NCBI RefSeq assembly: GCF_039654945.1 | Contig: NW_027361690.1 | Coordinates: 97,712,001-97,776,000 of the forward strand | Direction of reading: 5' to 3' | Origin: Dendrobates tinctorius | Taxonomy: Eukaryota | Length of the DNA stretch: 64,000 nucleotides | Part shown: positions 1 through 62,956 of the stretch, piece after piece | Numbering within the stretch: position 1 is the stretch's first letter | Layout of the letters: every line of letters begins with the position of its first letter | The notes under the pieces: model-generated | Seen by the model: the letters and a program-made list of their open reading frames with translations, nothing else | Database searches by the model: none | Told to the model about the DNA's origin: nothing | Program-made: the position numbers and the translations under genes

Positions 1-1089
1 CGTAGGACACTCGGTAAATGGACTATGTCGGACAGGGAGTATTTGTGTTGGTTTATTATTTTATTTTTGTTGCAGGAGACGAGGGAGTCAGCGATTAGAC
101 GATACTGTAAGTATGGTTTAATTAAGATTCAATAAAGGAGTCTGTGTGATTATTTCAATTAAAGGACTTTATTCTGGCTGTGTCTTTATTTACCATATAA
201 CTATAGGATTAGTAATGGATAGGTCTTTTTGACGCTTCTCCATTACTAATCCGTGGGCTTGATGTCACCGGACAATACAAAGGTGCCCTCAAACCCACAA
301 ATGTTACCCCACTTGCCACCATTACAAGGCAAGTGGGAAGAGCCAGGCTAAGTGCCAGAACTGGCGCATCTATAAGATGTGTCATTTCTGAGGCAGCTGA
401 GAGCTGATGTTTTTGGTCTGGGGGGGTGCCAATATACATGGCCCCTTCCCAGGCTATTAATATCAGCCTGCAGCTGTCTGCCTAGCCTTTGCTGGTTCGA
501 TTTTATAGGGGGACCCCATGTGAATTTTTTTTCTGGGGTTCCCCTGTAAACTAACCAGTAAAGGATAAGCAAACATCTGTGAGCTGATAATAGCCTGGGT
601 ACCTTTATTGACTCCTTCCAAGAATCTTAACATCAGCCCTCAGCTGTCAGCTTTCCCTCTGCTGGTTGTGAAAATTACGTAGGAGCCCATGCAATTTTTT
701 TTTTTTTTTACATTTTTTTGAAAAATAAACAGATATTGTATTTCACGTAAATTTTTTGTGTGTGTGTCTTTTATTTAACTATATGTACCATTTTATCAAT
801 GATGGTATCTGGCTGACACACATGTATGTATATATATATATTTATATATTTATATATTTGAACATGGTATGTAATGATATTATGGTATTCAATGGAGACT
901 AAAAGAAGAGGTTGGACAAGGAAATGATATCACAATTCTTTTTTTTTGTTAAATAATATATCTTTATTTATCTTGCAAATCCGCAAAGGAAACCGCATGA
1001 AAATCAGCATCAAAATCGTGCAGATTTTCAACTGCATTTTCTGCTTAGAAAGGAAGAATCCGCACAGAATTTTACAGAGGCAAATACGC

Positions 1090-2339: not shown

Positions 2340-4845
2340 TCCTCACTCTTCTGGAACTGAGGAGCAACGGGTGACTATTGTAATTTCGCTCCTTCAGGGT
2401 GAACCTGAAGCCTGGGCATATTCTCTTCTGAAGGACTATCAGTTACTTTGGACGGTTGAGATTTTTTTTCAGACGTTGGATCACACATATGATGACCCCA
2501 ATCGCGTCTCCCTGGCTGAGTCTATGCTATGTCAGCTTTGGCTGGAAGAATGGTCAGCAGACGAGTATTGCTGCGAGTTTCAGAGGTGGTCCACTAATAC
2601 TAACTGGAATGACCTCGCAATCTTGCCAGTTCTATCAAGGGTTATCTGTAAGGTTAAAGTATGCCTTTGCTCTTCATAGGACTCCGATCTCCCTTGAGGC
2701 AGCCATGTCTCTGGCCATCTGTGTAGACTGCAGTCTTCAGAGACACTTCAATTTGCAGAGGGCCCGGAGTCAAGGGAACCTGGGTTTAAGTCAAGCGAGG
2801 AACCCATGCAGTTGGACGAGGCATCATGTTGATCCATCGGTAGTTTGGCGTAAAGAGGAATGCATTTCTTCTGTAGTGGAAAGGGTCATTTTGTGGGTGC
2901 TTGTCCTTTCATATCCCACTGTAAACAACCTCTGGAAAACTAAGGAACCCAGGTTGCAAGGAGTTTGGCAACCCGAGTGTACCACTTCCTTTGTTGGTAT
3001 ATCTTAATTTTTCCTACTGGCCGAGATCCATCTTGGCAAAGATTACGTGGTCATTTCTGCCTCTCGACAGTGGGGAGAGATTTAATTTGATCGGCGCTAG
3101 GTTCTTCCATGCTCAAACCACAAATATTGACTGGATCAGTACCCATTATTGCTATTGACTTTCTTACTCAGGTTGTTCTTATGTTGCATTTACAGGTAGG
3201 GGTCATGCACTCTGAATTTAAAGACTTATGTGCTAGAGGGCTAGCCTTCTCTTGTGGTTCTTGAACTTCCTTGGCTTATGCTCCACAACCCTGTGGTAGA
3301 CTGGCAGACTCGGGAGGTGGTGAAATCGAGCGAGTATTGCCAAAAACACTGGGCACCTGGCTAGCCTGGGTGGGTACCCAATCTCTGCCCGATTACCTGT
3401 TTGACTTTGGGGATGTGTTTTCGGAACAGGGGTGTCAAGAACTCCCTCCACATTGTCCTTATGACTGCGTCGTTAATCTGACTCCAGGGGCCAAGCTTAC
3501 AGAGAGCAGATTATACAATATGTCTGGTCTAGAGAGGCAGAAAATAAAAGACTATATTGCTGAAAGTCTGGAAAGAATTATTTCAGACCTTCTTTAACTC
3601 CCAAAACCTACAAGAAGCAAAATAACCATAAACCCTGCTGTAACTAAATAAGTAAAAAGCAAGAGTGCATATACACACCACAGGGTTCCCAGTAATACTG
3701 TTTTTGATGAAAACTAGCATAAAAGCCATCCCATCGTCAACAATGTGACCTGATTGTGATGGTCTAATATTAAAAACCTTACCATGTGTCACAGTTGACC
3801 TCAGTTTGTGAACAAGGGCAAACAAAAGGACTCATCTATCGGGATCTCTCCAACCATTGGCAATTCCCAGTAGACCTTGGATTATTTGTCAGTAGATTTC
3901 ATTACTGATTTACCCGTATCTGCAGATAGTACACTTATTTTGGTGGTAATGGACAGGTTCAGCAAGATGTCTCATTGTGCTATCCCCCTTACCCAACGCC
4001 AAGACTTGGAGCAAATTTTCATCAAAGAAATTGAGAAATTACATGGAATTCCTACAGATATTGTTTCTGACTGGGGATTGCAATTTATTTTCAAATTTTG
4101 GGGATCCATCTGTCATTTTTTAAGCTTTTGTCCCACAGTCTAATGGCCAAACTTAAAATGTTACTCAGAATCTTGAGACTTATCTTAGGTATTTGGGTCT
4201 GATAATCAGGAGGATTTGGTAATTTACTTACCTCTAGCTGAATTCGCGGTGAACATGAGTCTACCGGTTCTCATTAGTCTACTGGTAAGTCCTCGTTCTT
4301 CAAGGCCTGCCGGTTTCATCCTGAGTTCAGCTCTACTAATAGGAATCATTCCTCAGAGAGATGGGGTTCAACTATAAGAGTGTGATTGATCGAAGACATT
4401 TGGTGTGGTTGTCCTCGAGGGACTTTAAGTTAAAGGTCCCTTCCTGGAAACTGTGTCCCAGGTTCATCAGTCCTTATAATATTGTGTCTGTTGTCAATCC
4501 TGCAGTATTCCGTCTTGCCACCTACTTTTAGGATTATAATGTGTTTCACTGGTCTCTGCTCCAAAAATACTTTGCGTCCTTTGAACCATTGCAACCACCT
4601 CCATGTCCGGTCATTGTTGATGAGAATTTGACGTTTCAGACAGCCAAGATATGGATTCTCGCATGGTTAGTCGGTCTCTTCAGCATCTGGTACACTAGAA
4701 GGGTTCAGCATCTGGTACACTAGAAGGGTTGAGGTCCTGAAGAGATAATGTGGAATCTAGCATCTGTTGTCCATGTAGTCAGGCTATTCTGATCCTTTCA
4801 TGCGGCACACCCTGATAGACCTGGCCCTGAGGTCCCTCTTGGAAG
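2340..4845 (+). mobile_element. Degraded Ty3/Gypsy (chromovirus-like) LTR retrotransposon internal region
   Basis: Gag-like VISLLQGEPEAWA...YDDPNR...EY..EF; RT-upstream DFGDVFSE...LPPHCPYDC..NL.PG; integrase LSVDFITDLP...VVMDRFSKM...LHGIPTDIVSD.G.QF; chromodomain-like remnant near 4600-4800; many stops and frameshifts. Confidence 0.88.
3681..3762 (-). ncRNA. Degenerate HDV-like ribozyme (copy C)
   Basis: P1 CCAUC/GAUGG, L3 remnant UUGACG, P4 AUGCUAGUUUU..AAAACAGUAU, J4/2 CUGG, P2 CAGG/CCUG; lies in a non-Gypsy insert (about 3595-3830) inside the Gypsy element. Confidence 0.4.
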
Positions 4846-5674
4846 ACAGCAAGAGAACAACAAGGTTTACCCGTACAGGCCTCCAATCAGGATGCAGTGG
4901 ACCCATATAATAAAGATGGCAACACAGGTGCAAAAATACCAATCAAGCAACTGCTCGCAGCCTACCAATACATGGAGGGGGCAGTTGCCTGGTATGTTGA
5001 TGCACAAAACAACTTGTATGCGGCGCTGTTCACACTAAGGCCATGCACAGCATCCAGGCCAGCCTAGTACCAACACCCTTCTATTAGCTCAGGCGGGCTG
5101 CCCAGCGCTAACAAAATGCATGCCGTGTGAACAGACACCGCAGTCTACAAGACCAAATGGGCCCAGCTGCACCCTGAATAAAACGTGCAAAAAACACATT
5201 TAAAAAAAATGTGGAGTATTAGCTGATATTTTGGCCAAAATACGTGAGCCCGTAACCTACGTCAAAGATCTCCACGTTTACGGGTACCTAACACTAAATA
5301 CTAATACAGTACAGTACAATAAGAGGACTTGAAAATCCTCCAATAATGGAAAACAGCAAGAGAACAACAAGGTTTACCCGTACAGGCCTCCAAACAAATG
5401 CACTATCAGGATGCAGTGGACCCATGAACAGCGCCGCATACAAGTTGTTTTGTGCATCAACATACCAGGCGACCGCCCCCTCCATGTATTGGTAGGCTGC
5501 GAGCAGTTGCTTGATTGGTATTTTTGCACCTGTGTTGCCATCTTTATTATATGGGTCCACTGCATCCTGATAGTGCATTTATTTGGAGGCCTGTACGGGT
5601 AAACCTTGTTGTTCTCTTGCTGTTTTCCATTATTGGAGGATTTTCAAGTCCTCTTTTTGTACTGTGCTGTATTA
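4846..5674 (-). mobile_element. Non-coding retro-insertion (permuted ~510-bp unit plus inverted segment) with 14-bp TSD
   Basis: GTCCCTCTTGGAAG at 4832-4845 and 5675-5688; 4846ff repeated directly at about 5353ff; 5425-5674 is an inverted copy. Confidence 0.8.
5211..5284 (-). ncRNA. Putative HDV-like ribozyme (copy A)
   Basis: Manual fold: P1 CCCGUAA/UUACGGG, P2 GUGGAG/CUCCAC, P3 UCU/AGG, L3 UUGACGU, P4 GUAUUUUGGCCAAAAUAU, J4/2 CUAA. Confidence 0.7.
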
Positions 5675-7074
5675 GTCCCTCTTGGAAGGAAGAGTCAACG
5701 CTCGCACTATAAGAAAAAGACTCTAGATTTGCATGAGCTGGTGATAAGGCCGGCTTGTGCAAATTATTTTATCACGCCCACAGGGACATGACATGGAAAG
5801 AGGGATGAAAAGTCTGACCCCATCAACTAGTCAAAGCCCTCATTAGCATAGGAAACAGGGACAACAATATAATTGCTTTTTTAAAGCATTTATTTAACTG
5901 AATTATGTTAGTTAGGGAGGTCATTCATACACAGGTGAATGCTGCTGGGATAGAGGGCATGGGGGACCCGACAGGTTCCCTGTAATTACTTTTATATTTT
6001 GATACGTTGGACTTTTCCGAATGCCACATATATTTTTTATCTTTGTTTACAATTGGGGAAAAGGGGGTGATTTGAACTTTTAAATTTTTTTTCATATTTT
6101 TATAAAGTTTTTTTTTTTACTTTTCACTAACTTTAGGGGACCTTGACCTGCGATCGTCTAATCACTTATGCTATATACAGAAATACCACAGCATTGGCCT
6201 GACGCAGCTCCTCTGAAGAAAATTTGTAAAACTCTGAGAATTTAACAACATTAAAACAAGTGATATTTTAGTGTGTATTTATATCACAAGATAATAATAC
6301 AAAAGTATATGAAGTTGACATTACTGTTGTGATACTGACCTACAGAATAAATCCAATACTTTTGTGCAGCACAGTGAATAGAGTAAACCTTTTGGTTAAG
6401 TTTTATGTACCTGAAAATGATTCCACTGACAAATACAGCTGATCCTGAAAAAATAAAAAAAGGCATCAAATGACTACGTAGACAAAAGTATAATAAAAAG
6501 TTATGTTCCCCGGAACATGACAATAATAAAGTGGGGAAAAAATAGTTTACCATAAAGGCCAAAATTGGCTGTGACACAAGTGGTTAATCCTGTCTTCTAG
6601 ATCAGTAAAAAATAAGTTGAATAATAGCAGACCCAAAACTGAACCGCATTCTGAGCGGCATGAATGTGAAAGACAGAAAAAAGCTAAATAGTAATATAAA
6701 AACCAATTCAAGAATATTCAGCAGCGTGGAAATGAATAATCTAGATAATGTTAATGGGAATCTGTCAGGTTTTTGGTATGTAATCTGAAGATAGCATGCT
6801 GTAGGGGTTAAAATACAGATTTCAGCAATGCTTCTCTTATCTTGTGGTTTTGGTTGCTTGCAATTATTGTTTTAGTACAAGGAAGTTATCATTGCAACAC
6901 TTACCTCCTGATCAGACTCCACCCCCTCCTGTGATGAGCAGCTCAGAGTCTATAGACATTGTATATACAGAGCCTGGTGTGGGCGGGGGCAGCTTTCTCA
7001 GCTCTGCTTCGTTGCAAAAACATGCCAATCAAATTAACGCATATTGTACCATGCAAATCAAAATAATGGCTTTT

Positions 7075-12112: not shown

Positions 12113-15100
12113 AACTCTGGTTTAACCCTTTCGCGCCTGAGCCTGTTTTTGCCTTCGTGACCAGGCCAATTTTTTCAATTCTGACCAGTGTCACTTTATG
12201 AGGCCATAACTCTAGAACGCTTCAACGGATCCTGCTGATTCTGACATTGTTTTCTCATGACATATTGTACTTCAGGATAGTGGTAAAATTTCTTAGATAT
12301 GAACTGCGCTTATATGTTAAAAAAAAATCGAAATTTGGCAAAAATTTTGAAAATTTTGCAATTTTCAAACTTTTAATTTTTATGCCCTTAAATCAGAGAG
12401 TGATATCGCACAAAATAGTTAATAAATAACATTTCCCACATGTCTACTTTACATCTGCACAATTTTGGAAACATAATTTTTTTTTTTTTTTTAGGAAGTT
12501 ATAAGGGTTAAAAGTTGACCAGCGATTTCTCATTTTTACAACAAAATTTACAACACCATTTTTTTTAGGGACCACCTCACATTTGAAGTGAGTTTGGGGG
12601 GTCAATATGACAGAAAATACCCAAAAGTGACACCATTCTAAAAACTGCACCTCTCAATGTACTCAAAACCACATTCAAGAAGTTTATTAACCCTTCAGGT
12701 GCTTCACATGAATGAATGGAATGTGGAAGGAAAAAATAAACATTTAACTTTTTTTCACAAACATTTTACTTCAGAACCATTTTTTTATTTTCACAAGTGT
12801 AAAAACAGAAAATGAACCACAAAATTTTTTGTGCAATTTCTCCCAAATACGCCGATACCCCATATGTGGGGCTAAACCACTGTTTGAGCACACGGCAGAG
12901 CTCAGAAAGGAAGGAGTGCCGTTTGACTTTTTCAATGCAGAATTAGCTGGAATTGAGATAGGACGCCATGTCGCATTTGGAGAGCCCCTAATGTGCCTAA
13001 ACAGTGGAAACCCCCACAAGTGACCCCATTTTGGAAACTAGACCCCTTAAAGAACTTATCTAGATGTGTCGTGAGCACTTTGAACCCCCAAGTGCTTCAC
13101 AGAAGTTTATAACGTAGAGCCATGAAAATAAAAAATCATTTTTGTTCCACAAACATGATCTTTTAGCCCCCAATTTTTTATTTTCACAAGGGTAACAGGA
13201 GAAATTGGACCCCAAAAGTTGTTGTCCAATTTGTCCTGAGTACACTGGTACCCCATATGTGGAAGAAAACTACTGTTTGGGCACACGGGGGGGCTCGGAA
13301 GGGAAGTAGTGACGTTTTGGAATGCAGACTTTGATGGAATGGTCTGCGGGTGTCATGTCGCGTTTGCAGAGCCCCTGATGTGCCTAAACAGTGGAAATCC
13401 TCCACAAGTGACCCCTTTTTGGAAACTAGACCCCCCCAAGGAACTTATCTAGATGTGTGGTGAGCACTTTGAACCCCCAAGTGTTTCACTAAAGTTTATA
13501 ATGTAGAGCCGTGAAAATAAAAAAATCATTTTTTTTCCACAAAAATGATCTTTTAGCTCCCAATTTTTATTTTCACAAGGGTAACAGGAGAAATTGGACC
13601 CTAAGAGTTGTTGTCCAATTTGTCCTGAGTACACTGGTACCCCACATGTGGGGGGGGACCACTGTTTGGGCACACGGTGGGGCTCGGAAGGGAAGTAGTG
13701 ACGTTCTGGAATGCAGACTTTGATGGAATGGTCTGCGGGCGTCATATTGCATTTACAGAGCCCCTGATGTACCTAAACAGTGGAAACCCCCAATTCGAAT
13801 TCCAACCCTAACCCCAACACACCCCTAACTCTAGCCCTAACCCTAGCCCTAACCCTAGCCCTAGCCTGCCTACCTGCTTTTTTTTCTTTACTTTTTTTTT
13901 ATTTTTGTGTTTTACATTTTTTGTATTTTTGACTCATAGTAACGCCACTTCTCCTCTGATCTCACACTGGCAGATGATCAGAGGAGAAGCAGCGTTACTA
14001 TGTGACAAGATCGCTGCCCGGCACATAGTAACGCCACTTCTCCTCTGATCTCACACTGACAGATGAGCAGAGGTGAAGCAGCGTTACTGTGTGACAAGAT
14101 CGCTGCCTGACACAGCTGTGCCAGGCAGCGATCAGCTGTGCCAGGCAGCGATCTAGTCACACAGTAACGCTGCTTCACCTCTGCTCATCTGTCAGCATGA
14201 GCTCAGAGGAGAAGTCGCGTTATAATGAGGGAGATCGCTGGGAAACAAGCAGCTTTCCCAGCGAGCTCTCTCATTGGCTGCTGTGACGCGACGTCATCAG
14301 GACCTGAACCAATCAGGTCTCGATGACGTCGGGGGTCCCAGCATGCATTGTGCACCGGGATCCCCGCGTTATAAGGTATGAGGGGGTCCCGGGGGGCACA
14401 AAACCGCCGACAGTAGATAAACGTCGGCGCTGCACAAAGCCCAGCAAGCGCCAACGTTTATCTACTATGGGCGGTCGCGAAGAGGTTAAAGGGAATCTGG
14501 TTTAAAGGGGTTTAAGAAGGAGGATGTCATCTCTAGCAGATGGGAGGTGCCGGACCGGACTGCGCCATCCATCGGACCGGACCGGACTTTTTCGCCAAAT
14601 TTCTGTTTTTTTCACAAATAAACGCAATAGTTATTTACATAAATTTACCACTAACATGAAGCCCAATATGTCACGAAAAAAACAAATCTCAGAATCACTG
14701 GGATCCATTGAAGCGTTCCTGAGTTATTACCTCATAAAAGGACACTGCTCAGAATTGCAAAAAATGGCCATGTCATTAAGGTCAAAATAGGCTGGGTCAT
14801 GAAGGGGTTAACTGTGGTTGATCAGAAGGGAGCGGGCATTTGGATTTGGGTGCACAGATTTAGCCACATTTCTTTTGGGGGTGAGGAGCTGTAGCGCTTT
14901 TTCAGAGCCTTTGTACTACCAGTAACGTGGAAGCCCCCTATATTTCCATTAATAGATGATGGACTTGGGTGGGGACTTGTTTTTTGTGGATTGATATGAA
15001 GCTTTTGTAGGGAACATTTTACATAATATTTGGGATCATGTTCATCCTGTTCTCAACGCTGAACACTTACATCGGGGTTTACATCTAAATCTTCGAGTGA

Positions 15101-25806: not shown

Positions 25807-26991
25807 CTGTAATAATTTGGTTGCATGTAAACAGGTGCTGCACATTTTAAAATGATTAATACTGTAACTTTGGCTGTTATCAAGTGTTTCTTGCCATTAG
25901 TCTCTCCCAATGAGTGGAATGAGACAGTTTGCCAAGGGTGAACTTGGCTGTGCTGGAGTGTTAGAGATAGCAGACAGGGAGGGGACTGGTTTAAACACAG
26001 ATCTATGCCGCATGGACAGGGGGAAAGGAATTTCCAGGAGGGCAGAGAAGACAGTCTGGACAAAAGTAGGAAAGTACATGAAGTGGAAATGACAGGATAG
26101 AAGCTGTGATACACCAGCTACAGCCTGGATACACACAGATCTCGCATCCAGCCTATATTACCGGTAGAGACACTCACACAAGGGAAACATCTAAAATTTG
26201 GATCAGGCTTCAAACTGTATATTAGGGGGTCTAAAAATTAACTAAATAATGAAGGATACAATTAACAAACCTAGAGTAAAAAAATGATTTCTCCCTTGTA
26301 AAAAAAAGTCCAGTCTTAAAGTAAAGATGCATTGTAGTAATGTAATCTTTCACACTAGTGACATTCCAGCTGTTGTAAAACTACAACTCAGAGAAGGGAA
26401 CTGTAGTTTTGTCACAGGTGGAGTGACATGGATTGAAGAACATCGATTTAAACTAATGGTATGTGATTTTTGCACCACATACTAGTACAGTACTTGGCAG
26501 TCCCATAGACAATGAATGGAGCTGCGCATGCTCCATTCAGATGGGTACAGCATCTCAGGATCACTAGGAATCCCACCGATCAGACCCCCAAACTTCCTTC
26601 TTGTGCAGGTGAGAAGAACAGGTGAACGGGAAACACATATTTGAGTGATTGTGAGGAAACCCCCCCATTGATCAAACATTTATCCTCTATCCTGTAGACA
26701 GGCAAAAAATGTGTAGGCGATGGAAGATAATGTGTTGCTGTGGCCAGCCTTCTCATGATTGGGAGCTTTCACCATCATCTCTGTGGATGAGATGGGAACT
26801 CCCATTTACATGAATCCATTTCCCCATTTTCTTCACAAAGGTCGCACATACCAGCTGTTAAAAATATTAAAAAACATTTCTCCATTAGGGTCTCATTCCT
26901 GTTTTGATTCAGTTACGGAAGACTGGATTCCTGCAAAATAAATATGATTTTGGCAGAGTGACAAAATAAAACTTTACAGAGGCTTTCTCAC

Positions 26992-27253
26992 CAGTGGCCA
27001 ATGCCTCCTCTCTGTAGTCTTCCTGTCCGGGCTGCCGTATATTCCATGTGGTTACTGGCAACAGGTTGATTTCCTCCATTGAGCTGAGCCTCACCATATC
27101 CATGTGTGTACTGCGAGGCTGGTAGCGTGGAATAAAACACAGTTTGCCTTGATGGAATATATCTCGTATGATGTCTCCAGTCTGAACCTCATCAGCCATA
27201 TTCAGAAATACGGCAACGCGCTGAGCTGTCTGGTAACGGTGGTGAGAGAGAAG
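26992..27253 (-). CDS. MTHFS: MTHFS coding exon 2
   Basis: LLSHHRYQTAQRVAVFLNMADEVQT...CFIPRY...HMDMV...WNIRQP...REEALATG within ORF 26909..27340. Acceptor ttgcag, donor G|GTGAGA; 262 nt, phase 0 to 1. Confidence 0.96.
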
Positions 27254-29661
27254 CTGCAAGAATATTTCATTATGAGAAATCTTGCATCTCACAAAATGTA
27301 GAGGATAAGAACTATGACTGTATTTCAATCTCCATACCATTATTTTGCTCTAAATACAAAATAAATAATATGGAACATATAGTATATTTTATGTGGGCAT
27401 CAGGTAGCTTCAGAGCTGAAATCTCTGAGCATTCCTCTCTGGCATAAAGGGCTATCCTCATCTCAGTGATTGTATATAACTAGGAAATGTAGGAACCAGG
27501 AGGGGGAGCAGAAACATGGACATCATGGCATATTTTTTACAATAGAGTATATTGATAAGCGTAATGATTTTATTATTCGATACAGAATGTTTCAGACTTT
27601 TTTTTGGTACAGAACAGTCTCAATGCCATCTGTCTGTCCCTCACTTCATACTTACCTAGCAGAAGTAAAATAACAAAAAGTACAACACGTTTGGCAATAA
27701 AACTGCAAGATCGGACTACCCAAGTTATGGTTGCAGGCCTTTACCATGGAAGCATAAACCCGATTATCAGACATAGGCACAAAATAAAAAGTTGCTTTGT
27801 CTCACAAGAAAATAAATGGCTGCGATCATGGACACCCCATTTAAAATGTTGGACAGTCACTCCCTTATGAAGATCAATTTTCTAGCTGCAGCAAGTGGAA
27901 CTCATCTTATTAAAAGATTGATCTGACATTAGAGGGGGGGGGGGGTCCAAAACAAAAAATTATTTTAATCCTAAATGTTTATTAAAAATGATCATAATCT
28001 TATCTCTTTTCTAATATACTTTAAAGCGGTATTCCCATGTCCAACATCCTATTCCAATATGTAGTTGGTGTAATAATAACAATATTAGCAAATACCGCCA
28101 ATTAGAAATATATTCTAGTTTTTCTGATTCGCTGTCTCTTTCCTCATGTGCAGGCATTGCAGGACCTTAGGTGTCCATTGTTCCGACAACTAGCTGTCAC
28201 TATATCACTGGTCATACCGAAGGTCCTGCAATGCCTGCACATGAGGAAAGAGACAGCGAATCAGAAAAATTATACTACATTTCTAATTGGAGGCATTTAC
28301 TAATAGTTATTACACCTACTACATATTGGGATAGGATCTTGCAGATGGGAATATCCTTTAATTAAAGAGCACCTATCATCCCTTCACTACGTTTTTTTTT
28401 TTTTACCATCTTCCTCTTTGATGCCAATTCATATGAGAACCTCCAGTGCATGCTGGGATACTCGAATGAGTTGTCAATAGGGGGTTGAAGCTGCAATCAT
28501 CACCACAGCCACTGCCCCCATCCTGATACTCCTGCACGCACTCTAAGGCTATATGCACACGGTGCGTTTCTGCTGCACATACACAGCAGAACTGCATGTG
28601 ATGTACAGCACCATTGTAGCCTATGTGAAACAAAATCTACTGTGCACATGCTGCTTTTTTTTCTGCGCGGATTTGGTGTAGAATGAAAAAAGCAGCATGT
28701 CACTTCTTTTGTGAGCTTTTGGTGCAGTTTTACACCTGCTCCATTCTTGAAATCCGCAGGTGGAAAACCGCAGGGGAAAACTGCACAAAACATGCAGTGA
28801 AACCGCACAAAAAAGCACTAAATACGCAGGATATATGCAGGTCATTTGACCTGCAGATTCAGTGTAATCTGCGCAGAAAATTCCAAAGCAGAATACGCCC
28901 CGTGTGCACATACCTTTATAAGAGTAGATGGAGCAGCAGTGCGCACGATCTACCACGGCTCCACTCACATAGGGTTCTTCAGAGGCTCTTGGGACTGGTT
29001 GGACCTGCAGTGATCAGGAAGTTATCCCAAATCTGAAACTAACCCATTAACAGAAAATCCATCAGTGGCCTTGTTGTGATGGCCCGATGGCCGAGCTTGT
29101 AACGCCTTTATCTGTCTTCTTCTGAGCTCCTCCTTCCAGCTGATTTATGGCCACAGAACTCAGCAAAGATGAAGGGAGACAAAAGCCAAACATGGCAAAA
29201 GTTATAATGAAGGTCAATTCGGCACTATTGTAGTATATGGCCCAGTCATTGAATACGCCCCAATCCCGTTCTGCGGAGGGTTCGGCCGTAACCGATGGAA
29301 CCACCAAACAGGTACCTAGACCACAGTATGGAAGCATCCTAATGCACTGTGCTTCACTACCGTCACAAACATGTTGCCTTCCAGCACCCCACACCTGTCC
29401 TGGCTACGTGCACATTCACGAGGCCTAAACCTTATCCGAGCCTGCTAACGGTAATAGCGGAGAAGTTGCCCACATCAACCAATCAGGTTACAGCTCACAT
29501 GCTCCAAGAGCATGAGAAATATGAGCTGTAATCTGATTGGCTGCTACGAGCAACTTTTTTTTGTTCAATAAACTTTATTGATAAACACTTTTCCTCTCTT
29601 ACGGGCTGCACAAGAGACGTGTTACCCCAAGAATACACAGTGCTGGGCTGTGGTCACACAC

Positions 29662-50288: not shown

Positions 50289-51202
50289 ATATAAAAGCTT
50301 GTGTCTCGTGTTGGCGCACGCACCTACACCCTGCAATCCCCGCTGATTATGGGATAGTAGATTGAGCTTTGTTGTTTGTGGGGGGGGAGGCCTTCAGTTT
50401 TTAATTTTTAGTACATTTGATTATGTAAATGTATGTTTGACATATTTTCTACTTACAGTTGTGCTCAAAAGTTTACATAGCCTGGCAGAATTCTGTAAAT
50501 ATAAAATGATAGTCAGGTTGACCAACAAAAATGTCATCCATAACTGCCAGGAAAATTGTTCTGGATGCAAAGAAAAACTCACAACTAGCATCAGCTGAAA
50601 TACTGGACTCTCTGAAAATTAGCGGTGTGGCGGTTTCAAGATGCACAATAAGGAGGCACGTGAAGAAAAATGGGCTGCATGGGTGAGTCACCAGAAGAGA
50701 TCCATTAATGGGCAATTGCCAAAAGGTATCTCACCTACAATATGCAAAACAGCACAGAGACGAGCATCAGCACTTCTGGAACAAGGTAATTTGGAGTGAT
50801 GAGGCCAAAATTTAACTTTTTAGCCACAACCATAAACGTTACATTTGGAGAGAAGTCAACAAGGCCTTTGATGAAAGGAACATCAATCCTACTGTAAAGC
50901 ATGGAGGTGGATCACTGATGTATTGGGGATGTGTGAGCTACAAAGGCACAGGAAACTTGGTCAAAGTTGAGGGAAAGCTGAATGCAGCACGTTATCAGCA
51001 AAGACTGGAGGCAAATTTGCAATCATCAGCCCGGAAGCTGCACATGGAACGTACTTGGACGTTCCAACATGACAACGATTCAATCCACAAGGCCAAGTCG
51101 ACCTGTCATTGGCACTCAAACAAAAAAGGAAGCACTCTGTAGCGCCATAGCATGCACACATGAAAAATGAATTGCATTACTGCATTAGAAATATGAAAAA
51201 TT

Positions 51203-51277
51203 GAAAAAGCTTAGCACATAAAATGGCCAATTTATGTGTACCTGGAAGCCATGTTAAGGCGTTTATCGGTTTCCAGG
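51203..51277 (-). ncRNA. Putative HDV-like ribozyme (copy B1)
   Basis: P1 CCUGGAA/UUCCAGG, P2 GAUAAA/UUUUUC (one mismatch), P3 GCC/GGC, L3 UUAACAU, P1.1 UA/UA, P4 CACAUAAA..UUUAUGUG, J4/2 CUAA. Confidence 0.65.
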
Positions 51278-51603
51278 ACCTTAACCTAATGCCAATCCTC
51301 ACTTAGGTTCCCATACAGATGAAGACTTTAGTCTATGTAAAGCCTCTCCTTAGACAGAAGTCTATATCTTCGTCGAGGGGTGGTGGCCCTGCTGTGATTA
51401 AAAACGCCTGCGGCTAAAAGGGGGAGTGCTCAGTCAGAAGGTTAATGAATACAAATTTTAATAAACTTACTGTCACTTCTAAGTATGAACAGGTGCTTAA
51501 CCTAGAGTCACCAACTCATATACACTCAAACAAAAAAGCCATAACATGCAAACATGAAATATGAAAAATGAATTGCATTACTGCATTAGAAGTATGAAAA
51601 ATT

Positions 51604-51678
51604 GAGAAAGCTTAGTGCATAAAATGGCCAATTTATGTGTACCTGGAAGCCACGAAAAGGCGTTTCTCGTTTTCCAGG
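51604..51678 (-). ncRNA. Putative HDV-like ribozyme (copy B2)
   Basis: P1 CCUGGAA/UUCCAGG, P2 GAGAAA/UUUCUC, P3 GCC/GGC, L3 UUUUCGU, P4 CAUAAA..UUUAUG, J4/2 CUAA. Confidence 0.65.
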
Positions 51679-52714
51679 ACCCTAACCTGTTGTTGGCGAC
51701 AGCAGAACAAAGTGTAGGTTCTGGAGTGGCCATCTCAGTCTCCTAACATCAATATCATTGAGCCTCTCTGGGAAGATCTCAAGCGCGCAGTTCATGCTAG
51801 ACGGCCCAGAAATTTACAGGAACTGGAGGCTTTTTGCCAAGAAGAGTGGGAAAATAAAGAACCTCATCCACAACTACCACAAAAGACTGCAACAAAGGGG
51901 GAGTAATATTCCTGATAAAATTGATAACAAATTTTATTGAAAATGATAATACATATAAAAACGAGTACCAATAATAAGTCGTATATGAGGACAAGATCAG
52001 AAAAGAGGCTCAGTGGGAACAAATGAAACCAACACCCTCCATACAAGAGGTAGAGTGGCTATCATAAGTGATATCTGGACATCCTTCATACCCTCTAGGT
52101 ATGGCTCTATGATGATTTATGTGACTATGGTTTTTGCTTTAGTATTATTGTTCACAAAAGACTTCAAGCTGTCATTGATGTTAGAGGGGGCAATACACGG
52201 CATTAAGGAATGGGGTATGTGAACTTTTGATCAGGGTCATTTGTATGTTTTGGGTTGTCATTCTGATTTAAAAAAGAAAACACAGTAGTTTGACAATAAA
52301 TGGCTTCACCCAACCACTAAACATGAGTGGAGAAAAAGTTTTGGTGTTATCATTAATATTCTCTGGAAAAAGGCCACGAAAGCAAAAATTCTTCCGGGGT
52401 ATGTAAACTTCTGAGCACAGCTGTATGCCTTAGCTTTGACTGCACGTAGTTTCTGCAACCACTGAGATATATACATCCAGCAATGGCCAGAGTCTGTTCT
52501 CTCAATAGGGACTTCATGCAAAAAAAAAAAAAATCTTATATTTTTTTTTTTTTTTTTGCAGTCACCTGCTATAAATCAATGCCCAGTCTAATGTACTTTG
52601 CTATACAGTTAGAGGGCAGTCTTGCACCGCTCACTACCACATCACCACAGATGTCACATCTATGGCGAGAAGATCTCTGTTCAATGGAAGTCTTCAACTG
52701 TCTGCTATGGTTTT

Positions 52715-60520: not shown

Positions 60521-61350
60521 CACACTAGACCAATACTGACGACTACAAATAGTACAAAAACTAGTAAATCACAGGTGTTGGACAAAAGAATTAATGAAAA
60601 TAGGGAGTATCCCTACCAGTTAACTCTTGCAAACACTCAGCCTAATGTGGAGCTGAAACAAAAACTAGTCGGAAAAACAGGAAAAAAAAAAAAACTAATA
60701 AAAAGATATCATAAGAATATAATAACAATCACAAAAATTATCAGAATAACCAGAATTGAATAGGACTAAGTAGAATGTAAATATACAGAAGAAAATATCA
60801 ATCTAATTGCAATATTAAATCAAGTGGTTTGTTCAGACCTAATGGTACTCTTGTATTTAATTTAAAAATCCAAAAGGATTCACGATTTAATAATTTTCTC
60901 CTGAAATCACCTCCCCTAGTAGATCTATAGACTTTCTCTATTGCTATAATTTTGAGACTATCAGTTTTACCTCCATGAACAGTTTTACAATGATAAGAAA
61001 CTGCTGAAATATTATAATTGCTACTAGTAGCTTCTGACAAGTGTTTCCTAATTCTCTTTTTAAGAGGTCCTATTGTACAGCCTACATATTGTAGGTTACA
61101 AAAAACGCATGTCATATAAAGGCTTTTCCAAATGTGGACATCATCCCTGTAAAGTCTGCAACTATGTGGTTAAAACCAGCAGATTCACTTCTACTGTTAC
61201 TGGCATATCATACCCTATTCAGTCTCACATAAATTGTAATTCAGAAGGAGTAATATATGTTATTGAATGCGTTTTTTATGTAGGCTGTACAATAGGACCT
61301 CTTAAAAAGAGAATTAGGAAACATTTGTCAGAAGCTACTAGTAGCAATTA

Positions 61351-62956
61351 CAGTGGGGAAAAAAAGTATTTAGTCAGTCAGCAATAGTGCAAGTTCCACC
61401 ACTTAAAAAGATGAGAGGCGTCTGTAATTTACATCATAGGTAGACCTCAACTATGGGAGACAAACTGAGAAAAAAAAATCCAGAAAATCACATTGTCTGT
61501 TTTTTTTTCATTTTATTTGCATATTATGGTGGAAAATAAGTATTTGGTCAGAAACAAAATTTCATCTCAATACTTTGTGATATATCCTTTGTTGGCAATG
61601 ACAGAGGTCAAACGTTTTCTGTAAGTCTTCACAAGGTTGCCACACACTGTTGTTGGTATGTTGGCCCATTCCTCCATGCAGATCTCCTCTAGAGCAGTGA
61701 TGTTTTTGGCTTTTCGCTTGGCAACACGGACTTTCAACTCCCTCCAAAGGTTTTCTATAGGGTTGAGATCTGGAGACTGGCTAGGCCACTCCAGGACCTT
61801 GAAATGCTTCTTACGAAGCCACTCCTTCGCTGCCCTGGCGGTGTGCTTTGGATCATTGTCATGTTGAAAGACCCAGCCACGTTTCATCTTCAATGCCCTT
61901 GCTGATGGATGGAGGTTTGCACTCAAAATCTCACGATACATGGCCCCATTCATTCTTTCATGTACCCGGATCAGTCGTCCTGGCCCCTTTGCAGAGAAAC
62001 AGCCCCAAAGCATGATGTTTCCACCACCATGCTTTACAGTAGGTATGGTGTTTGATGGATGCAACTCAGTATTCTTTTTCCTCCAAACACGACAAGCTGT
62101 GTTTCTACCAAACAGTTCCAGTTTGGTTTCATCAGACCATAGGACATTCTCCCAAAACTCCTCTGGATCATCCAAATGCTCTCTAGCAAACTTCAGATGG
62201 GCCCGGATATGTACAGGCTTAAGCAGTGGGACACGTCTGGCACTGCAGGATCGGAGTCCATGGTGGCGTAGTGTGTTACTTATGGTAGGCCTTGTTACAT
62301 TGGTCCCAGCTCTCTGCAGTTCATTCACTAGGTCCCCCCGCGTGGTTCTGGGATTTTTGCTCACCGTTCTTGTGATCATTCTGACCCCACGGGGTGGGAT
62401 TTTGCGTGGAGCACCAGATCGAGGGAGATTATCAGTGGTCTTGTATGTCTTCCATTTTCTAATTATTGCTCCCACAGTTGATTTCTTCACTCCAAGCTGG
62501 TTGGCTATTGCAGATTCAGTCTTCCCAGCCTGGTGCAGGGCTACAATTTTGTTTCTGGTGTCCTTTGACAGCTCTTTGGTCTTCACCATAGTGGAGTTTG
62601 GAGTCAGACTGTTTGAGGGTGTGCACAGATGTCTTTTTATGCTGATAACAAGTTTAAACAGGTGCCATTACTACAGGTAATGAGTGGAGGAAAGAGGAGA
62701 CTCTTAAAGAAGAAGTTACAGGTCTGTGAGAGCCAGAAATCTTGATTGCTTGTTTCTGACCAAATACTTATTTTCCACCATAATATGCAAATAAAATGAA
62801 AAAAAAAGACAATGTGATTTTCTGGATTTTTTTTTTTCTCAGTTTGTCTCCCATAGTTGAGGTCTACCTATGATGTAAATTACAGATGCCTCTCATCTTT
62901 TTAAGTGGTGGAACTTGCACTATTGCTGACTGACTAAATACTTTTTTTCCCCACTG
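61351..62956 (-). mobile_element. Full-length Tc1/mariner DNA transposon, apparently intact
   Basis: TA|CAGTGGGG...CCCCACTG|TA, with ~200-bp terminal inverted repeats and a complete transposase ORF. Confidence 0.97.
61567..62589 (-). CDS. Tc1 transposase, 340 aa, DD34E
   Basis: N-terminal paired-like HTH region and GAPRK linker, [25 protein letters not shown]; 34 residues between the second D and the E; no stop codons. Confidence 0.96.

Follow-up and report, generated by a model that had tools for sequence, protein, structure and literature searches.

A probable decayed non-coding retroelement with predicted hepatitis delta virus-like ribozyme modules in the genome of Dendrobates tinctorius

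Results

A tandem non-coding insertion in a Tc1 relic

A 64,000-nt stretch of the Dendrobates tinctorius genome (contig NW_027361690.1, positions 97,712,001 to 97,776,000; hereafter the window, in whose own numbering all positions are given) contains a 571-nt non-coding insert that interrupts the relic of a Tc1/Sleeping-Beauty-type transposase gene and carries two predicted ribozyme folds of the hepatitis delta virus (HDV) type. The original prediction for this DNA, made from the sequence alone, described an insert of about 1.4 units that lacks open reading frames (ORFs) and splits a Tc1 relic, and repeat spacing, an ORF check, tblastn and empty target sites all bear this description out. The locus is laid out as follows:

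50513..51112, plus strand: left part of the Tc1/Sleeping-Beauty-type transposase relic, residues 58-257
51101-51113: left copy of the 13-bp target-site duplication (TSD), ACCTGTCATTGGC, delimited by empty-site joints
51114..51684, minus strand: putative non-coding retroelement insert of 571 nt (1.42 units, each of 401 nt), read from 51684 to 51114
51684-51525, minus strand: segment A, first direct-repeat copy
51524-51284, minus strand: segment B, between A and A'
51283-51114, minus strand: segment A', second direct-repeat copy
51685-51697: right copy of the 13-bp TSD, ACCTGTTGTTGGC, whose final 4 nt (AGGT in element sense) also match the unit
51694..51855, plus strand: right part of the transposase relic, residues 257-310

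Segments A and A' are direct head-to-tail repeats with 87-92% identity and a start-to-start spacing of 401 nt, from which the figure of 1.42 units follows. Both parts of the relic were placed with tblastn, for which an intact Tc1 transposase encoded in the window served as query, and the insert splits the relic at residue 257. The insert has a GC fraction of 0.39, and the longest ORFs that touch it encode 41-51 amino acids (none longer than 51); a protein search with its spurious 41-residue ORF returned zero candidates. Poly(A) is absent. At the 5' junction there is a 4-nt microhomology (AGGT), and the boundary with the right TSD is ambiguous by these 4 nt.

The two TSD copies, ACCTGTCATTGGC and ACCTGTTGTTGGC, differ solely in CA versus TG, both of which are expected from two decays of one ancestral CpG; the 13-bp duplication with reciprocal CpG decay had been predicted in just this form. 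Furthermore, DNA-run contigs from the same organism join position 51108 directly to 51693, skipping 584 nt (571 + 13). Uninterrupted Tc1 copies therefore exist, and 51114-51684 is a true insertion with target duplication.

A blastn search of the insert against the 64-kb window returned its self-match only, with no other relative at the DNA level. Exact-pattern scans found no match in viral contigs or in metagenome contigs, and a shorter insert pattern gave two unrelated chance matches only. A short interspersed element (SINE) head derived from tRNA was considered and rejected, since the search of the insert for a tRNA-like part came back empty.

HDV-like modules at the start of each repeat

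Each repeat opens with the same 75-nt fold, in which all five helices occur in HDV order (located by hand and checked by script). The two modules and the parts of the upstream copy are:

51604..51678, minus strand: upstream HDV-like module, 75 nt, predicted cut 5' of C51678
51203..51277, minus strand: downstream HDV-like module, built alike at an offset of 401 nt, predicted cut 5' of C51277
51678-72 (CCUGGAA) with 51648-42 (UUCCAGG), minus strand: upstream P1, 7 bp
AAC, minus strand: upstream J1/2
51668-63 (GAGAAA) with 51609-04 (UUUCUC), minus strand: upstream P2, 6 bp, then 1 unpaired nt before P3
51661-59 (GCC) with 51651-49 (GGC), minus strand: upstream P3, 3 bp
51658-52, minus strand: upstream L3, a 7-nt loop whose position 1 is U and whose positions 5-6 are CG
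51641-40 (UA, directly after P1) with L3 positions 2-3, minus strand: upstream P1.1, 2 bp
51639-32 with 51623-16, minus strand: upstream P4, 8 bp, with a GGCC-containing loop
51615-10 (CUAAGC), minus strand: upstream J4/2, in which C51615 is the putative catalytic C

As read from the sequence, the predicted fold is the nested double-pseudoknot topology of the HDV and CPEB3 ribozymes. Two same-orientation folds with predicted cuts 5' of 51277 and 51678, 401 nt apart, had been proposed before, and both folds and sites were reproduced. The earlier estimate that the 5' end of the insert lies some 6-10 nt from the second of these sites also agrees with our placement, 6 nt upstream of the cut at C51678 with the 4-nt boundary ambiguity noted above. 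The subtype is atypical in combining C1-G37 with a P1.1 of A22-U38 and U21-A39.

Other assignments were tried. A hammerhead or other Rfam ribozyme class was rejected: no hammerhead scored at the gathering level across the window, and none appeared in 50900-51900 when E values up to 10 were allowed. Shifting the register of P1 so as to put G at +1 was likewise rejected, because the complementary 3' strand is absent.

A second insertion and covariation between two lineages

The window holds a second insertion of ribozyme type, which served as a comparator:

4846..5674, minus strand: second ribozyme-type insertion, 829 bp, non-coding
4832-4845 and 5675-5688: its 14-bp TSD (GTCCCTCTTGGAAG)
5211..5284, minus strand: its HDV-like module, apparently intact (the 5284 module)
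5284 module, helices: P1 CCCGUAA/UUACGGG; P2 GUGGAG/CUCCAC; P3 UCU/AGG; P1.1 C38-G22
5284 module, loops: L3 UUGACGU; J4/2 CUAAUA

The sense part of this insertion runs from 5425 to 4846 and comprises ~1.14 units of ~507-519 nt, with the ribozyme module 141 nt inside it. On its 5' side lies a partial copy of 252 nt in inverted orientation (5674 to 5425), and the arms are 98-99% identical, which indicates a young insertion. The two insertions can be aligned over only ~90 nt, namely the module plus ~12 nt upstream of it. Neither is joined to a coding element: the original prediction had held that copies always attached to one would speak against it, and this is not so for the two insertions in the window.

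Just upstream of the predicted cut, ~12 nt (at 51679-51690 and at 5285-5297, minus strand) are kept between the two elements as GUUAGG(G)U. At 51679-51690 this stretch reads GGTTAGGGT, or ~1.5 vertebrate telomere repeat units, and one contig subfamily lacks 6 nt of it.

Within the modules, element lengths are identical save for J1/2 (2 nt in the 5284 module versus 3 nt in the local modules). The upstream, downstream and 5284 copies form 23, 25 and 23 of 26 pairs, respectively. A catalytic C that opens J4/2 and is followed by a constrained A is a feature of HDV-like ribozymes (PMC3774820), and here J4/2 starts with CUAA in each of the three copies, the C being C51615 upstream, C51214 downstream and its counterpart in the 5284 module. 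UUNNCGU, the L3 motif, is shared by the upstream copy, the family majority and the 5284 module; at 51252 the downstream copy departs from it with A for G.

Pair changes between the two families were counted by script after correction of the register, because MAFFT misplaces the 1-nt difference in J1/2 length. Fourteen pairs differ between the families, of which 11 still pair and 10 are altered on both sides, giving a binomial P of ~0.002 for retained pairing under an assumed pairing chance of 0.375. Divergence is 50% in helix strands and 27% at unpaired positions. Even in the uncorrected MAFFT alignment, 85.9% of cells are paired versus at most 50% with partners slid; none of 500 shuffles of that alignment reached the observed number of paired cells, of both-side changes or the covariation score, while 35 of 500 reached the observed count of further pair types.

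Descriptor searches give a sense of how easily such a fold arises by chance. An HDV descriptor that requires pairing only matched ~8 unrelated loci per 128 kb (both strands of the window), so a fold of this kind read by eye is weak evidence alone. Once the L3 and J4/2 motifs were added, exactly three sites in the window remained (51678, 51277 and 5284), whereas 400 dinucleotide shuffles gave 0.0125 hits per 128 kb, a rate to be read with the post hoc nature of this descriptor in mind, as it was built from the very sequences that it finds. We take the module as real because fast-evolving helices keep their pairing around a slow unpaired core, the signature of selected RNA structure. At the family level, and as judged from the two lineages compared, it is very likely a genuine HDV/CPEB3-type module.

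Family abundance and decay of the local copy

Contigs of four public runs were placed on 50950-51850; these are assembled contigs only, in which molecule ends and rare forms are not visible. The unit is very abundant in DNA of the same organism, where the summed word depth over most of A is 10^4 to 5x10^4, of the same order as over the Tc1 flanks. The unit was also found under three other organism labels, and the family accounts for thousands of contigs from other parts of the genome and from related species. The majority letters given below are single letters from contigs of DNA run X8 and do not form an assembled consensus; the figures in brackets are the depth of the majority letter over that of all letters:

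51656: L3 position 3; local U breaks P1.1, majority A gives A22-U38 (14,000 / 14,031, X8)
51616: P4 closing pair; local A, pair lost, majority G restores C-G (31,321 / 36,342, X8)
51252: conserved L3 G; local A, majority G (10,053 / 10,803, X8)
51265: P2 5' side; local U, pair lost, majority G (409 / 438, X8)
51205: P2 3' side; local U, pair lost, majority C (16,715 / 16,877, X8)

The upstream module thus carries two defects (51656 and 51616) and the downstream module three (51252, 51265 and 51205), where 51265 and 51205 are the two sides of one P2 G-C pair. Family majority letters mend every one of them. The L3 change at 51252 is the same G-to-A substitution that abolishes cleavage in the Nasonia R2 ribozyme (PMC3774820). 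As judged from these departures from the family majority, both ribozymes at 51114-51684 are probably inactive, which counts against the element being active here. That the copy is old is indicated by 8-13% divergence of A from A' together with two changes in a 13-bp TSD.

Insertions of 7 nt (ATGAAAA, AATGAAT) occur at 51159-51165, within a AAATATGAA-type micro-repeat of A', in contigs from X1, X6 and X8. They may be alleles of different length at this locus or differences between copies.

Contigs from putative RNA runs

Run X1, guessed to be RNA, yielded two contigs identical to the window and one with 1 other letter and a 7-nt insertion. A further X1 contig of 1,042 nt (depth 39.9) has CCUGUC in the 5' strand of P1, in place of the local CCUGGAA. 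No end pile-up and no back-joint at the predicted site were reported in the assembled contigs, which cannot show ends. A lone joint that goes back 390 comes from a contig with an inverted arrangement and does not represent a circle. In run X17 (another organism, also guessed to be RNA) a diverged subfamily occurs at higher depth, with a modest excess over its representation in DNA.

Discussion

We consider it reasonably probable that 51114-51684 is an old, decayed insertion of a short non-autonomous and non-coding retroelement with a unit of ~401 nt, each unit of which opens with a 75-nt module of the HDV/CPEB3 type. In active members of the family, the module would cut read-through or multimeric transcripts 5' of the first C of P1, releasing unit-length RNA with 5'-OH and 2',3'-cyclic phosphate ends that a retroelement reverse transcriptase would copy by target-primed reverse transcription. 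Since the RNA that is reverse transcribed must span the cut site, the template would be a multimer that had stayed uncut, monomers linked through template jumps, or circles sealed by RtcB, the tRNA ligase; template-jumped monomers could also account for an insert that ends 6-10 nt beyond the cut site. Copying would end in short microhomology joins. Such a process could account for inserts of more than one unit with an intact junction inside, TSDs of 13-14 bp, the lack of poly(A) and the 5' inversion of the sister element. The mobilising enzyme would most likely be of the Penelope type: layouts that are tandem plus inverted, and without poly(A), are typical of Penelope-like elements.

A more specific form of this proposal, and a rather unlikely one in our estimate, is that the family represents the first HDV-type retrozyme, with units of ~400-500 nt cut by a C1-G37 ribozyme, made circular by the tRNA ligase of the host and returned to the genome through a reverse transcriptase of the Penelope type. 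Taken by itself, a circular RNA stage in the family is a real possibility, if one that falls somewhat short of an even chance. The retrozyme reading put forward in the original prediction stands as regards a TSD-flanked, non-coding insertion of more than one unit with one ribozyme-type fold per unit; on the other side, the local modules carry defects.

Several observations weigh against a ribozyme-bearing element mobilised in this way. The pair at the predicted cut site is C1-G37 in all three copies, and the canonical G1·U37 wobble is absent. The active L1Tc ribozyme starts with C, as the primers used for it carry 10 nt upstream and then CCCTG (PMC3185411), so the wobble is not universal and its lack does not disqualify the fold. 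No Rfam model matched at gathering score across the whole window. The best match below threshold (15.5 bits, E = 4.8) covers the first half of the HDV-F-prausnitzii model; the other HDV-type Rfam models gave nothing at E up to 10, and for the 5284 module Rfam found no match. The covariation compares two independent lineages only. A competing hairpin of 4-7 bp (ACGN with NCGU) is predicted inside P1 and dominates the pseudoknot-free minimum free energy fold in two copies. Neither end of the insert falls on a predicted cut: the 5' end precedes one by 6 nt, and the 3' end lies 164 nt past the other. The 401-nt monomer is only as structured as its shuffles (z = -0.98), and a rod-like monomer was rejected on the same value. 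Furthermore, the X1 contigs pass both flank junctions and both predicted cuts uncut and at a flat depth of ~27, consistent with read-through transcription or with DNA but not with processing.

The link to a Penelope enzyme within the window is weak. A Penelope-like reverse transcriptase and endonuclease had been claimed for it; what was found are two GIY-YIG ORF fragments at 60798-61387, which score 18.7 and 19.2 bits, below the Pfam cut-off of 22.6 bits, and no reverse transcriptase among the 49 window ORFs scanned. Judged from their sequence, the fragments are probably relics of a Penelope-like endonuclease in an inverted arrangement.

The competing hairpin occupies 51670-51652 in the upstream copy and 5276-5259 in the 5284 module (minus strand), as ACGA/UCGU versus ACGU/ACGU with one co-varying pair, and it competes with P2, P3 and L3. 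As modelled, it may be an inactive conformer or due to chance.

Alternatively, the element could be a SINE-like dependant of a long interspersed element (LINE) that uses an HDV-like ribozyme for 5' processing only, as R2, RTE and L1Tc/NARTc do, to trim itself from host co-transcripts. The tandem layout would then be a by-product of template switching or reflect a tandem master copy, with no unit-length or circular RNA stage. We hold this explanation to be unlikely, but several features suit it: HDV-like ribozymes in retrotransposons have 5' processing as their established role (PMC6765202, PMC3185411, PMC3774820), the insert starts just 6 nt from the predicted cut, TSDs of 13-14 bp and a 5' inversion are also compatible with LINE endonucleases, and the contigs gave no sign of circles. 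It does not explain why the insert fails to start at +1, why a second ribozyme with an intact unit junction lies inside the insert, or why the ribozyme of the sister element is found 141 nt inside its sense part. Conservation between families of the ~12 nt upstream of the cut would be unexpected if these were merely target DNA, and a poly(A) or LINE-like tail is absent.

Less probable still is a Penelope-type tandem insertion that contains no ribozyme at all, the HDV-like fold being a coincidence in U/A-rich sequence read by eye. The permissiveness of the pairing-only descriptor (~8 loci per 128 kb), the lack of an Rfam match and the non-canonical first pair are all in keeping with such a coincidence. 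It sits poorly with 10 double compensatory changes relative to an otherwise unrelated element whose module has identical element lengths, with the conservation of the L3 and J4/2 motifs, with the low chance rate of the motif-anchored descriptor (0.0125 hits per 128 kb), and with family majority letters that restore each broken pair. A local tandem duplication or minisatellite formed in place, as two direct repeats at 401-nt spacing might suggest, is next to impossible given the 13-bp TSD, the empty-site Tc1 joints in DNA contigs, which already contradict it, and the thousands of family contigs elsewhere in the genome and in related species.

If the preferred reading of a short ribozyme-bearing retroelement is correct, its closest parallels in layout are the metazoan retrozymes without long terminal repeats (LTRs). 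Animal retrozymes consist of small, low-GC, non-coding tandem units flanked by TSDs of over 4 bp (PMC7229834), and those with hammerheads are thought to depend on Penelope-like elements (PMC7229834, bioRxiv 10.64898/2026.07.22.740005). Like those of axolotl, mussel and newt (satellite 2), the present element has small (170-400 nt in theirs), low-GC, non-coding head-to-tail units, one ribozyme per unit (here predicted), a TSD of more than 4 bp, and no LTR, primer-binding site or polypurine tract, and it belongs to a family that is abundant in amphibian genomes. Retrozyme ribozymes and the HDV-like class also share the same end chemistry, ligatable by RtcB. Unlike these retrozymes, which carry a type I hammerhead per unit, the element has an HDV-like module and no hammerhead by Rfam, and comprises just 1.42 units at 51114-51684. 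Retrozymes are small RNAs encoded in genomes that excise themselves, form circles and retrotranspose. Our literature searches found no HDV-type retrozyme, retrozymes being described with hammerheads only.

The second parallel is with retrotransposons that bear a ribozyme at their 5' end. R2, RTE, baggins and L1Tc, as well as some non-autonomous elements, are established carriers of HDV-like ribozymes (PMC6765202), and the present module resembles those of R2, RTE, baggins and L1Tc/NARTc in being a double pseudoknot in retroelement RNA with a cut, here predicted, at the 5' base of P1 (PMC6765202, PMC3185411, PMC3774820). NARTc is likewise a non-coding dependant that carries a ribozyme, and the L1Tc ribozyme also begins with C. 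In R2, RTE, baggins and L1Tc, however, the ribozyme marks the element's 5' end and the upstream sequence is target DNA, whereas here there is a ribozyme per unit and the upstream sequence is conserved. Unlike elements that start at +1, the two insertions in the window start 6 and 141 nt upstream of the predicted site. In the strict sense the element at 51114-51684 is a member of neither the hammerhead retrozymes nor the 5'-ribozyme retrotransposons; its layout is the retrozyme layout.

The module itself is like the CPEB3 ribozyme and the genomic and antigenomic HDV ribozymes in its topology, its 7-nt L3 with U...CG, the C that opens J4/2 and a weak P1.1. L3 presumably resembles that of CPEB3, which we take to be UUCACGU, a likeness that serves as a lead only. 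The module differs from these ribozymes in having C1-G37 for G1·U37 and a P1.1 of A-U/U-A, or of G-C with the strands swapped. It also differs in setting, being part of a high-copy repeat and not of a single-copy intron (CPEB3) or a viral genome (HDV).

Were the retrozyme form of the proposal to hold, a high-copy vertebrate family with an HDV-like module per unit would imply that the ribozyme is an interchangeable part of the retrozyme lifestyle. Such a family would be a cellular and heritable source of delta-type ribozymes, bearing on the origins of the deltavirus and CPEB3 ribozymes. It would also give deltavirus-like circular RNAs a counterpart encoded in a genome, a possible reservoir for the recruitment of delta ribozymes by introns (CPEB3-type) or viruses. 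The definition of the class would also widen to include C1-G37 and a swapped or A-U P1.1, a variant that present covariance models miss. The copy at 51114-51684, which is probably dead, would be of value as a dated fossil and as one of the two lineages that reveal the covariation.

Other features of the window

The intact Tc1 transposase used above has its closest relatives among proteins of Ranitomeya imitator (96-98% identity). The two GIY-YIG fragments (60.8-61.4 kb) are arranged head to head on opposite strands, beside an intact Tc1 ORF (61567-62589). A third non-coding tandem array occupies 12732-13866, with ~2.7 copies of ~389-393-nt units that are 70-91% identical; no ribozyme was recognised in it by Rfam or by the motif scan. 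Immediately after the array come telomere-type repeats, (CCCTAA)n, at 13794-13866. Finally, a 143-residue ORF at 26909-27340 (minus strand) matches the 5-formyltetrahydrofolate cyclo-ligase family (E = 2e-17), a match that makes it a likely exon of an MTHFS-like host gene.

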